The notes beneath the pieces were generated by a model. The model made no database searches and was not told the DNA's origin. It saw nothing but the letters and a program-made list of their open reading frames with translations. From Pelomyxa schiedti (lineage: Eukaryota > Protista > Evosea), in the NCBI GenBank assembly GCA_020536535.1, contig JAHLWZ010000093.1, positions 1 through 64,000 of the forward strand: a stretch of 64,000 nucleotides of DNA. The letters are read 5' to 3'. The translations under genes were made by a program, and so were the position numbers. Shown piece by piece: positions 57,393-61,650 of this stretch; position 1 is the first letter of the stretch; each line of letters opens with the position of its first letter.

Positions 57393-59867
57393 CTATGATA
57401 TAAGTACCAGGCCACTGGCACCATGGCCACCCGTGTGTGAACCGCCACTTAATTCCCTGGGCGCACCACCTTGTCCAACTGTGATGTCCAGCACCTGCCC
57501 AGGAGTCACAGGGTGGTCCATGACTGTCGAGTAACCCCCTCCACCTCCCCCACTGCTTCCCATTGCGCCCCCGCCACCGCCTCCAAACCTCCACCCAGCC
57601 TGAGCGTCCTTGGTGAATGGCGGCATTGCCCCATTCCCACTTTGTGAGGGTGGTGAGTTATCTGAGCAAAAGGAACCTTTGCTTCCACCGCATCCTGCAT
57701 AGTCGAACGTGGCTGCACCACCTGTGCCTCCATTCCCTGGTGCTCCCCCAGCACCCCCACCACCTCCACCTTCTGAGCTTCCATCACCTCCCTTTGCCCT
57801 AGAGCCCTGGCCACCACTGCCCCGTGAAGAGCCTCCACATGCTACCAGAATCCCCAGTATGCATGAGTCTCCACCATTTCCGCCATAGCAGCGATTTCCG
57901 CACCATGATGCTCCTGCACCGCCGCCACCAATGGCAATTGCATTGATGGTTCTCAGGCCTTCTGGGACTGTGAATTTGTATCTGCCTGGCTCCATAAACG
58001 CCTTTATTGGCATAGTAAAACTTATTTCACTCCAGTCAGAACTCATGATCATATCCTGTTCTTTTTTCATTGAGGAAACGTGGGAAAAGGAGATACCTGG
58101 CCGATTCCACCCACTATGAACATTGCTTTTACTCGCGTTATGTATCTGGTTCCTGGCTGCAGTGAGGTGACCTTAGTTTCTTTGTCTTGTCCAAAGTACA
58201 CTTGTGTGAAGTCGCAGTCTTGTTGTGCTAATTGAACCTCGAAGGTAGGTGGTACAGTCCAAGGAGTGTTTGCTGGAAGTTTAGACGTTATGGTGGCAGC
58301 GGAATTGGAAGCTATGTCCAGGCAGACTTTAACTTGAGGTGCTGGGAAAGATAGAACTGAAATTCTTCCCAAATGGGGCACTGAATTGCTAATCCGGGTT
58401 TTGTCTATTGCGAAATCAAACCAGGGTCCCTCTGCCAACTGTGATTCACAGTGCTTTGGTTGGAGATCATAGCTGTTTCCAAGTGTATTGAGACCGGATA
58501 TCACCTGCAGGGTGGTGAATGTGTTGGGGAAATTGACTGTGTGAAGGAGCGAGCCATGCAACACTTTGGAATCCGTAACAGAGAATAAAGTTCTGCCTTG
58601 TCGGTTGTCAGCTAATTTAAGGCATTTTGTTTATTTTGGCATACTTGTTTGTTGAGATAGAGCAAGTAGAAGCTCGGATTCTGAGGTGTCTAAGTGAGTA
58701 CGTAACTCCGATTCCCTCTTGGAGAGTGCTTCGCGGAGACTGGAGAATTCTTCCTGGATTTGGAGTCTGATAGTATCGGCTTCCAGTTTCACCTGAGCTG
58801 ATGCATTCTGCAACTCTCTTACCTTATCTTCATTTGATTTCAGATTCTCCACAACTTTGCAGGCTGCATCCAGGAAACTTTCTCTGGCAGTGCTACAGGC
58901 ATCATCTCTGACCGATATTTTGTGCCCTTTGTGGCTTCCGGATTCTTTACAGATGTGGCAACACAATTCCTAAAAGAATAGTAGGTGAGGAAAAGGTTTG
59001 ATGGACGAAGGTACACACTTTATCATCTTCGCACCAAAGAACGAGGTCTTTTCCGGAGTGAACTTTGCATTTCGGCTCATGCAATGTAAGTGCCGGTTTA
59101 TTTCCAATCGGAACTCTCACGTGAGATTGTGTGATACGAAACGAGTGAGTTGCCCGGTCGCACTCAGCGCACAGCGAAGTCTCTTCCTTCTCGCACCACA
59201 CAACGGCACCATTCACCTCGCACTCATCACACATAACCGCGTTGGCGTAAGAAGGTCGGGAGATAGAAGCAACAGAAGAGCTGCAATTAGACTTGGTACT
59301 ATTCCCTTGTTGCTCCGGCCCCAGGGAATCGCCTTCTTCTTGTTTAATTGTAATCGTTTTCCTTGACGCATTGTCCGGCATTCCCGCAATAGGGCAACCC
59401 AAGGAGTCCATCAGCGTGAGCACATCCATCAGCAGCGTGTGCTCTTTCTCACATATAACTGAGCACCCGCATGCCGGGCAACGATACCCCGGATTCTTCC
59501 CCACTGCAGAAGCTGTACCAGTACTAGTAGTAGTAGTAGTAGTATTAGAGCTAGTAGCACATGGCCGGTGCTCAGCCGAGTTCGTTGTTGACGATGCAGA
59601 CCAACACGCACGGCAGACGTGGTGGCCACACGGCGAAAGCAGCACGGGGTACCGTCTCACTTGTTCGCCGTGAACCGCCGCCATCTGGGGATTATGGGTT
59701 GGCTCGTCCCTGCGTGGCCTCTTCGTCTTTGGTGGGGTGGTAGATAACGATGCGGTTGACGACGCCCCCCGTCGTAGGAGGAACGGGGTACCACAGCATG
59801 CACACTGCAAAGGGATGTATGGCTCAGTCAGAGTGCCGGCTACACTCACTTCCGGCTTCTCCGTCAT
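57393..59867 (-). CDS. TRIM-like RING - B-box - B-box - coiled coil - FN3 - glycine-rich domain protein (multi-exon)
   Basis: CACC...PCGHHVCRAC...CPAC RING with insertions; CDEC..CEKE..CAECD..H; CKVH..CEDD..CHIC..H..H; coil; VYFG...LQPGTRYITRVKA; Gly-rich C-terminal domain. Confidence 0.8.
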
Positions 59868-60030
59868 TTCACGAGCCAATCTGGGATTGCGTCGATTGGC
59901 GCTGAGAAACTCATTTTTTCAGGGCACAAAAACTGACAACAAACAGGATCGGCTGCTATTAGGCCCCCTCAGGAGCTCAATGCTAATGATTTGCCAAAGA
60001 AAGAGAAATTTTATTCAGTTAATAAACAGG

Positions 60031-61289
60031 TTAATGGCCGCAGCATGAGCAAGAACCACCAGTGCAACCCATTGTGGCCTTGAGCTGTGTCATTTGTTCT
60101 GGTGTCAGCTTCATTGCAAGGAACTTGTGGAAGCATTCCTTCTGCTCAGGGGTGAATGCAGCCGCAGCGGCCTTGCACCTTGCAATGCTCTCAGCACTGA
60201 AGTCACCATCAACGACTCCCTTGCAAGCTGCCTTCTGCTCCTCAGTGAACATTCCGCAGCACGATGAAGAGGCACCACCAGAGCAGCATGAAGATGGCTT
60301 CTCAGCACCCCCGTGGCATGTGCACTCGCCTGTGCAGTGGCAACCCATCGCGGCCTTGAGCTGAATCAACTGATCCGCACTCAGCTTCATGAACAGGAAC
60401 TTGTGGAGGCATTCCTTCTGCTCCGGTGTGAATGCTGCAACAGCGGCCTTGAATGTGGCAATGCTCTCAGCACTGAAGTCTCCAGAAACAACTCCCTTGC
60501 ACGCGGCCTTCTGTTCCTCATTGAACATGTTGCAGCATGACGAATCACCACCAGAGCAGCATGATGAAGCACCAGTTGTAGTCCCGTGGCAAGTGCACTC
60601 TGTGCCGCTGCAGTGACACCCCATTGCGGCCTTGAGCTGGGTCAATTGCTCCGGTGTAAGCTTCATGGCCAAGAACTTGTGGAAGCACTCCTTCTGCTCA
60701 GGGGTGAATGCAGCCGCAGCGGCCTTGCACCTTGCAATGCTCTCAGCACTGAAGTCACCATCAACGACTCCCTTGCAAGCTGCCTTCTGCTCCTCAGTGA
60801 ACATTCCGCAGCAGGATGAAGAGGCACCACCAGAGCAAGAGCACGAGGAAGTACCAGTCGTAGCACCACCAGAGCAAGTGCAAGGCTTATCAGCAGTAGT
60901 AGCACCACCAGAGCAGCAGCAGGGACCCCAAGCAGCCTTGAGTGCTGCTTGTTGTTCTGGTGTGAACTTGGTCTCAATGAACTCGTGCACCTTGGCCTTC
61001 TGCTCTGGCGTAAATGTGGAACACACACTCTTGAACCTAAGGATTTGTTTTGTTTCGTTTAGTCAATGGAAATATAATATATTATTATGAATTGAGTTTA
61101 TATATGTACTTTGCAATAGCATCAGCAGAGAAGTCACCAGTGATGACTGGTTTCATGGCTGCCCTTTGTTCCTCGCTAAACATTGCTGCGAATGGGCATG
61201 TGCTTGCACAACACTATACAAATGGAATTAACATTAACTTAGTGAGCACTCAGAATAATGGTACTTACTGTTGGTGTTGTTGTTGCCAT
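60031..61289 (-). CDS. Four-module helical repeat protein with metallothionein-like Cys-rich linkers (2 introns near the 5' end)
   Basis: Spliced MATTTPT-CCASTCPFAAMFSEEQRAAMKPVITGDFSADAIAK-FKSVCSTFTPEQ..., then three near-identical modules MFxEEQKAACKGVVxGDFSAESIA...FTPEQKECxHKF...LKAxMGC. Confidence 0.85.
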
Positions 61290-61650
61290 TTGTTTGTTAT
61301 TTCTTTATTGGTTTCTTGCTTTGTTGTTTGTTTCTTTTCTATCGTCGATTATTTTTATTTTTTTCTTGTTTCTTTTCTGATCACCTTTTCGGTTTTTATG
61401 GTTTGAAGGACGAAGAATTTGGTGGCTACGCATCAGATTTTTTGAGCGTGGAAATTACGCTCGTCTCTACGAGATTCAATAAACATTTGTTGGCGTTTCG
61501 GTTGGCGCAACCAAAACTAGGGAATAAAATAAATATAAAAAAAAAAAAAGATAGTTGTGATAGTGTGTTATTATGAGACGGGAAGTGTGACAGGGTTTGC
61601 TCAAAACTTACAATGCTAGTAAAACATACAACAGTGGACAGAGTGCCTGG

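Follow-up and report, generated by a model that had tools for sequence, protein, structure and literature searches.

Introduction

Metallothioneins are polyphyletic and arose repeatedly. In plants, the type 1-3 proteins comprise 60-85 aa, with Cys-rich ends on either side of a Cys-free spacer of ~40 residues that contains aromatics. The metallothioneins of ciliates (MTTs) carry CCC, CC and CxC motifs and are, to our knowledge, Cys-rich throughout, without folded helical domains. Helical proteins can bind metals as well: Csp-type copper storage proteins are long four-helix bundles with many Cys directed into the core, and ZraP, a member of the LTXXQ (CpxP/Spy/ZraP) family, is zinc-binding and periplasmic.

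The most widespread Cys arrangement in metallothioneins is CxC (PMC4755600). It is used extensively in two fungi, as CnMT1 and CnMT2 of Cryptococcus neoformans and TmMT of Tremella mesenterica consist of tandemly amplified Cys boxes with spacers between them, in the case of CnMT1 and CnMT2 as 7-Cys regions separated by spacers (PMC4755600). With 57 Cys in 257 aa, TmMT is the longest metallothionein known according to this paper from 2016 (PMC4755600). Ciliate metallothioneins, such as MTT of Tetrahymena, also have a modular primary structure and range from 96 to 181 aa (PMC4755600).

Pelomyxa schiedti is an anaerobe that lives with methanogens (PMC8887013, PMC10579272). Its genome paper makes no mention of metallothioneins or cysteine-rich proteins (PMC8887013), and for the Archamoebae we found no description of a metallothionein in the literature. 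Here, we analyse a gene from this amoeba, located in a window of 64,000 nucleotides (positions 1 to 64,000 of contig JAHLWZ010000093.1). Judged by its sequence, the encoded protein belongs to no described family, and nearest to it in kind are the modular metallothioneins.

Results

The sole long open frame under the gene, 60031-61026 on the minus strand, encodes 331 aa, and upstream of it an ATG at 61289 and two short GT..AG introns are visible. Reading this upstream sequence and translating the exons one by one yielded a gene of three exons (61289-60031, minus strand), in which both introns are GT-AG and the summed exon lengths are divisible by three (Table 1). The product is 376 aa long and contains 41 Cys and 9 His, close to the ~370 aa and about 40 Cys of the initial annotation. 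The exon-wise translation is identical to the public record KAH3766954.1 (P0005; "hypothetical protein Pelo_1175", Pelomyxa schiedti, on a contig of 124,525 bp), which we took as the full-length product. The gene is already deposited and annotated, though merely as hypothetical, and is uncharacterised.

A profile search of the P. schiedti genome with module and linker identified three loci of this family and no fourth one: the window gene, a partial copy on the same contig and a three-module copy on contig C561 (Table 1). Within the partial copy, a run of N cuts into the second module, probably because the repeats left a gap in the assembly. In the paralogs, both introns occupy the same codon positions, and the intron sequences differ, as does the length of intron 1. 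Since the exon model equals KAH3766954.1 and the intron positions are kept in spite of the differing intron sequences, we conclude that this is a real, spliced gene. Besides, two ENA proteins (P0001 and P0004, 281 aa each) represent a complete C561-type paralog and stem from contigs of 936 and 975 bp. The genomic C561 gene spans 1013 nt (849 nt coding plus 164 nt intron), and because both contigs are shorter than this version we infer that they are spliced cDNA, that is, transcripts of the C561 paralog rather than direct support for the window copy. Compared with the C561 copy in the genome, P0001 and P0004 lack one residue and P0004 has three substitutions besides; these differences could represent alleles or further unassembled copies.

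Table 1. Coordinates of the gene, the segments of its product, the conserved upstream block and the paralogous loci. Nucleotide positions refer to the window unless a contig is named.
Feature	Position	Strand or location	Remarks
Exon 1	61269..61289	-	ATG at 61289, 7 codons; start same as in KAH3766954.1
Intron 1	61214..61268	-	55 nt, GT..AG; C561 paralog has a 91-nt intron at the same position
Exon 2	61110..61213	-	104 nt; N-terminal CC-x3-C cluster and helices one and two of module 1
Intron 2	61037..61109	-	73 nt, GT..AG; splits codon 42 within module 1; paralog intron at the same position
Exon 3	60031..61036	-	1006 nt including stop at 60031-60033
N-terminal cluster	aa 1-17	-	3 Cys, 0 His
Helical module 1 (predicted)	60925..61183, aa 18-79	-	split by intron 2; divergent copy; 1 Cys, 1 His
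Linker 1	60805..60924, aa 80-119	-	9 Cys, 0 His; CCC, CTC, CSC, CC
Helical module 2 (predicted)	60619..60804, aa 120-181	-	3 Cys, 1 His
Linker 2	60529..60618, aa 182-211	-	8 Cys, 2 His; CHC, CTCH, CC, CC
Helical module 3 (predicted)	60343..60528, aa 212-273	-	2 Cys, 1 His
Linker 3	60253..60342, aa 274-303	-	8 Cys, 2 His
Helical module 4 (predicted)	60067..60252, aa 304-365	-	3 Cys, 1 His; DNA 95% identical to module 2
C-terminal cluster	60034..60066, aa 366-376	-	4 Cys, 1 His
Conserved 5' block	61400-61470	-	about 110-170 nt upstream of the ATG of the window gene
Partial copy	G000:C93:112257-112712 (L003 1357-1806)	same contig, ~51 kb from the window gene	KAH3766975.1, partial in GenBank
Three-module copy		contig C561	KAH3761152.1, 282 aa

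Translation and AlphaFold both bear out the architecture that had been proposed at the outset, namely four helical modules alternating with Cys clusters, and all motifs named there are present (CCC, CTC, CSC, CC, CHC, CxCH, AACKG, KECxH and [F/L]T[P/E]EQ). The length of the modules has to be corrected from ~55 aa to exactly 62 aa each. The segments between them are rich in S/G/T, and every module is flanked on both sides by such a segment with 3-9 Cys and up to 2 His. Accordingly distributed are the thiols, with 32 of the 41 Cys falling into the 128 non-helical residues (25%) and nine into the 248 aa of the helical modules; 30 of the 32 non-helical Cys sit in CC, CCC or CxC motifs. For the whole protein this amounts to 10.9% Cys, whereas the remaining long open frames of the window have a median of 3.2%. 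The 376-aa protein further contains 23 Phe and 1 Trp, and helix is predicted with confidence for two thirds of the chain. As the highest 19-residue Kyte-Doolittle mean is just 0.91, there is no signal peptide, as annotated before, and no membrane span.

In the AlphaFold2 model of the 331-aa exon-3 product, the modules reach a pLDDT of 70-83 and the linkers, modelled without metal, stay below 50; together with a whole-chain pTM of 0.31 this indicates independent beads on a flexible string. A single 92-aa repeat was predicted as four helices of 10-14 residues each (residues 4-14, 20-30, 35-48 and 51-60; pLDDT 85-90, pTM 0.62), along with short beta strands of low confidence in the CHC..CTCH segment (pLDDT about 60). 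Every helix begins after an [F/L]-[T/S] pair followed by x-E-[Q/S] (FTEEQ, FSAES, FTPEQ, LTPEQ), and because the TPEQ-type motif sits at each helix start, four times per module, it looks in the model like a generic helix N-terminal cap. A Cys is found eight residues past the leading Phe in helical units 1 and 2 of the module, and unit 3 has a Cys at +7 and a His at +9. Module 1 does not keep the helix Cys of the other modules. The fold check on one module that the initial annotation had recommended returned this four-helix model and no significant match in the PDB: Foldseek gave a best E of 2.2 for the single module and of 0.39 for the whole model, with a list led by armadillo and PUF repeat scaffolds, all at E >0.3. 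Using VIA-align with the module over 48,161 chains, the best Z was 4.7, and the matches were designed miniproteins and generic small helical bundles.

At the DNA level, TRF detected two repeats: a unit of 276 nt, present 2.8 times (score 1031), and a 39-nt sub-repeat located in the first linker. Linker 1 is made of these 39-nt (13-aa) sub-repeats, which are of the type C-x-C-S-G-G-A-T-T. The near identity of modules 2 and 4 noticed earlier was reproduced, as the corresponding repeat copies 1 and 3 share 95% identity over 221 nt, with copy 2 at 79%. Grouped by dS, the modules fall into two types, with the paralog's last module joining modules 2 and 4 of the window gene and its middle module joining module 3, which indicates that the window gene gained one module. 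In linker 1 of the C561 paralog there is one 13-aa unit fewer, leaving 7 Cys versus 9 in the window gene. The paralogs differ in having 3 or 4 modules and in the presence or absence of this one Cys sub-repeat; the protein was built by tandem duplication and represents a lineage-specific gene grown via module duplication.

The helical modules are under strong purifying selection, with dN/dS of 0.05-0.25 at dS of up to 1.06 (Nei-Gojobori, 62 helical codons). They are also better conserved than the linkers and contribute 47 invariant columns to the alignment. None of the 8 Cys and 2 His differs among the three linkers of the CHC type, in which about half of the other positions vary.

No relatives outside P. 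schiedti were found in any search, and on this basis the protein is a lineage-specific orphan at thresholds below which very distant single-module relatives would score. A word-index search over 5.8 billion proteins returned a paralog of P. schiedti as its sole match. The proposed HMM search for homologs recovered only the partial paralog (E 7.7e-57) among 1.84 billion representatives and otherwise nothing at E up to 0.001 (HMMER). Neither the exon-3 product nor one module gave a usable match in the ESM Atlas, no NCBIfam model came close to its cut-off, and back-translated pattern scans of metagenome contigs and 185,579 prokaryote genomes yielded no confirmed relative. In the PDB, no sequence match fell under E 0.29, the top one being a designed helical repeat with an LTPEQ-type motif. 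Considering characterised families, Pfam-A contained no metallothionein family that matched even at E up to 10, and no zinc-finger, CXC or knuckle family in Pfam matched. The initial description of the protein as undescribed stands after HMMER, Pfam, PDB, ESM Atlas, metagenome and prokaryote genome searches. Csp-type copper storage proteins were rejected as a match because the helices of the module are short (10-14 residues) and carry at most one Cys each; no Pfam family of this type was listed and no Csp chain was among the fold matches listed.

The suggested kinship to the LTxEQ hairpins of Spy, CpxP and ZraP did not hold up. Scores for Pfam PF07813 of 33.4 bits (exon-3 product) and 39.2 bits (full protein) exceed the gathering cut-off of 24.3, but they are the sum of weak matches of ~17 residues, restricted to positions 79-97 of the 100 profile positions, with no stretch significant alone, and one module by itself reaches 18 bits. 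When the entire assembly was searched with PF07813, the gene was not picked up, although positive controls responded in E. coli and three other genomes. When aligned by hhalign to CpxP and ZraP of E. coli (sequences from NC_000913.3), the module profile A1 reached probabilities of 0.3% and 1.3%, respectively, over 19-20 columns, and no CpxP, Spy or ZraP chain was among the Foldseek and VIA-align matches listed. The feature in common is the short [L/F]-T-x-E-Q motif that starts helices. Since the designed repeat in the PDB bears the same LTPEQ-type cap, the likeness appears to be a shared short capping motif. LTXXQ proteins are periplasmic and form a long bent alpha-helical hairpin, in contrast to a eukaryotic protein without signal peptide and with four short helices predicted per module. 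We therefore rejected membership in this family, as the match is confined to the motif, the hhalign probabilities are negligible, an N-terminal hydrophobic stretch is missing and the model contains no long bent hairpin.

Compared with metallothioneins, the picture is mixed. The high Cys content in the form of CxC, CC and CCC that marks this class is found in the non-helical segments of the Pelomyxa protein. In other respects the protein departs from metallothioneins, which are small, have few aromatics and lack regular structure without metal: it comprises 376 aa, has its 23 Phe and single Trp, and is mostly helix by prediction. Assignment to a described metallothionein family failed, both in Pfam-A and by the absent fungal family-8 pattern. 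Like CnMT1, CnMT2 and TmMT, it is a long protein of a unicellular eukaryote with tandem CxC-rich Cys boxes, and it shares with them short exons and extra Cys at the N-terminus, and in both the box number varies (PMC4755600). It exceeds TmMT (257 aa) in length. Whereas the spacers of the fungal Cu-thioneins are short and Cys-free, those of the Pelomyxa protein are conserved 62-aa domains with four predicted helices, and the Cys content of the fungal proteins is at least 22% versus 10.9%. Direct reading of the sequence did not show the fungal pattern X2-CXC-X5-CXC-X3-CXC-X2-C-X3, and HMMER and Pfam revealed no sequence similarity to these proteins. Tetrahymena MTT is also a modular protist protein; no similarity to the Pelomyxa protein was detected by the word-index search or HMMER. 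Plant type 1-3 metallothioneins are single small proteins in which the spacer is not a repeated conserved helical domain, and the plant metallothionein families of Pfam gave no match.

Discussion

We give about an even chance to the interpretation that the gene encodes a Pelomyxa-specific, cytosolic, metallothionein-like metal-thiolate protein with folded spacer domains, which would act in metal buffering, storage or detoxification. The four 62-aa four-helix domains would then be arranged as beads on a string between flexible Cys segments. In the reduced cytosol of an anaerobe, the 32 thiols and 5 imidazoles of the flanks would most likely form clusters with Zn(II), Cd(II) or Cu(I), and thiophilic metals could thereby be buffered, stored or detoxified. 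As the number of helices is even, the two flanks of a domain may meet; with the N- and C-flank side by side, each domain could have a single cluster of some 8 Cys and 2 His, possibly joined by the conserved helix residues C10, C26, C40 and H42. A metal role is favoured because the flank motifs and the growth by a variable number of boxes match the modular metallothioneins. The flanks consist to a quarter of Cys in CC, CCC and CxC, the last of which is widespread in metallothioneins (PMC4755600). The invariant linker Cys and His amid variable residues, the number of modules and boxes that varies among paralogs as it does in modular metallothioneins, and the lack of a signal peptide or membrane segment are likewise consistent with this reading. 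On the other hand, there is no homology to a proven metal-binding protein or, in Pfam, to any metallothionein family, and with the overall Cys content given above and two thirds of folded helix rich in Phe the protein is unlike canonical metallothioneins. Moreover, module 1 is without the conserved helix Cys, and the modules are conserved better than the linkers, which means that the main function may lie there, for instance in the binding of a partner. A more far-reaching version, which we regard as quite unlikely, would be a structured metallothionein of de novo origin in Pelomyxa, each domain templating a discrete cluster from its flanks and C10, C26, C40 and H42; such a protein might act as a buffer of Ni, Co, Zn, Fe or Cu in a cell filled with methanogenic and syntrophic endosymbionts of high metal demand.

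The strong conservation of the helical modules is also what speaks for a scaffold or adaptor, an unlikely alternative in which the 62-aa domains would bind a partner or ligand and the Cys/His segments would be structural zinc knuckles that stiffen the connections instead of a metal store. The short beta strands that AlphaFold places in the CHC..CTCH half of the linker would be knuckle-like, and the Foldseek list is topped by armadillo and PUF repeat scaffolds; yet the fold matches are insignificant, Pfam recognised no zinc-finger, CXC or knuckle family, and CC and CCC runs as well as a number of Cys boxes that varies between paralogs are unusual in structural zinc sites. Similarly doubtful is a thiol redox or sulfur buffer, with the 41 thiols taking up oxygen, peroxide, sulfide or persulfide without metal, either sacrificially or in a recyclable manner, in an oxygen-sensitive amoeba of sulfidic sediment. 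The density of thiols without a signal peptide and an anaerobic host living with methanogens (PMC8887013, PMC10579272) would fit, but CxxC redox motifs and a thioredoxin-like fold are lacking, nothing specific argues in favour, and the conserved His beside Cys (CHC, CTCH, CCGH) point to metal ligation over thiol chemistry alone. For an Fe-S scaffold role there is no specific support. That the protein is a divergent eukaryotic LTXXQ member acting as a zinc-dependent chaperone is very unlikely and largely refuted, as the whole-protein PF07813 scores above the cut-off are opposed by the narrow profile region matched, the low score of the single module, the hhalign result, the four short helices and the lack of a signal peptide. 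Finally, as the locus is repeat-rich and of low complexity, has long open frames in several further reading frames and is without relatives elsewhere, it could be suspected of being non-functional, namely a contaminant, an annotation artefact or an open frame derived from repeats; this is extremely improbable and is contradicted by two canonical introns at conserved positions in three loci, cDNA-sized spliced contigs for the paralog and strong purifying selection in frame.

Conserved, apparently folded helical domains alternating with Cys clusters would be an unusual design and offer a tractable system for asking how a folded domain could template a metal-thiolate cluster. Independent of its function, the gene is a clear case of a lineage-specific gene enlarging through module duplication, with copies of three or four modules. 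If the metal-handling role is true, it bears on the management of thiophilic trace metals in an anaerobic amoeba of an obligate methanogen consortium. If not, the protein is an orphan repeat protein, and orphan Cys-rich repeat proteins are not rare among protists.

Two further observations concern the surroundings of the gene. The 5' flanks of all three loci (window, L002 and L003) are divergent except for a conserved block, GCGTAA ... GAATT[C/T]TTCGTC, which may be a shared promoter or regulatory element. The downstream neighbour (57393-59879, minus strand) is a TRIM-like gene, whose frames match RING and B-box zinc fingers, a TRIM coiled coil and, weakly, FN3.
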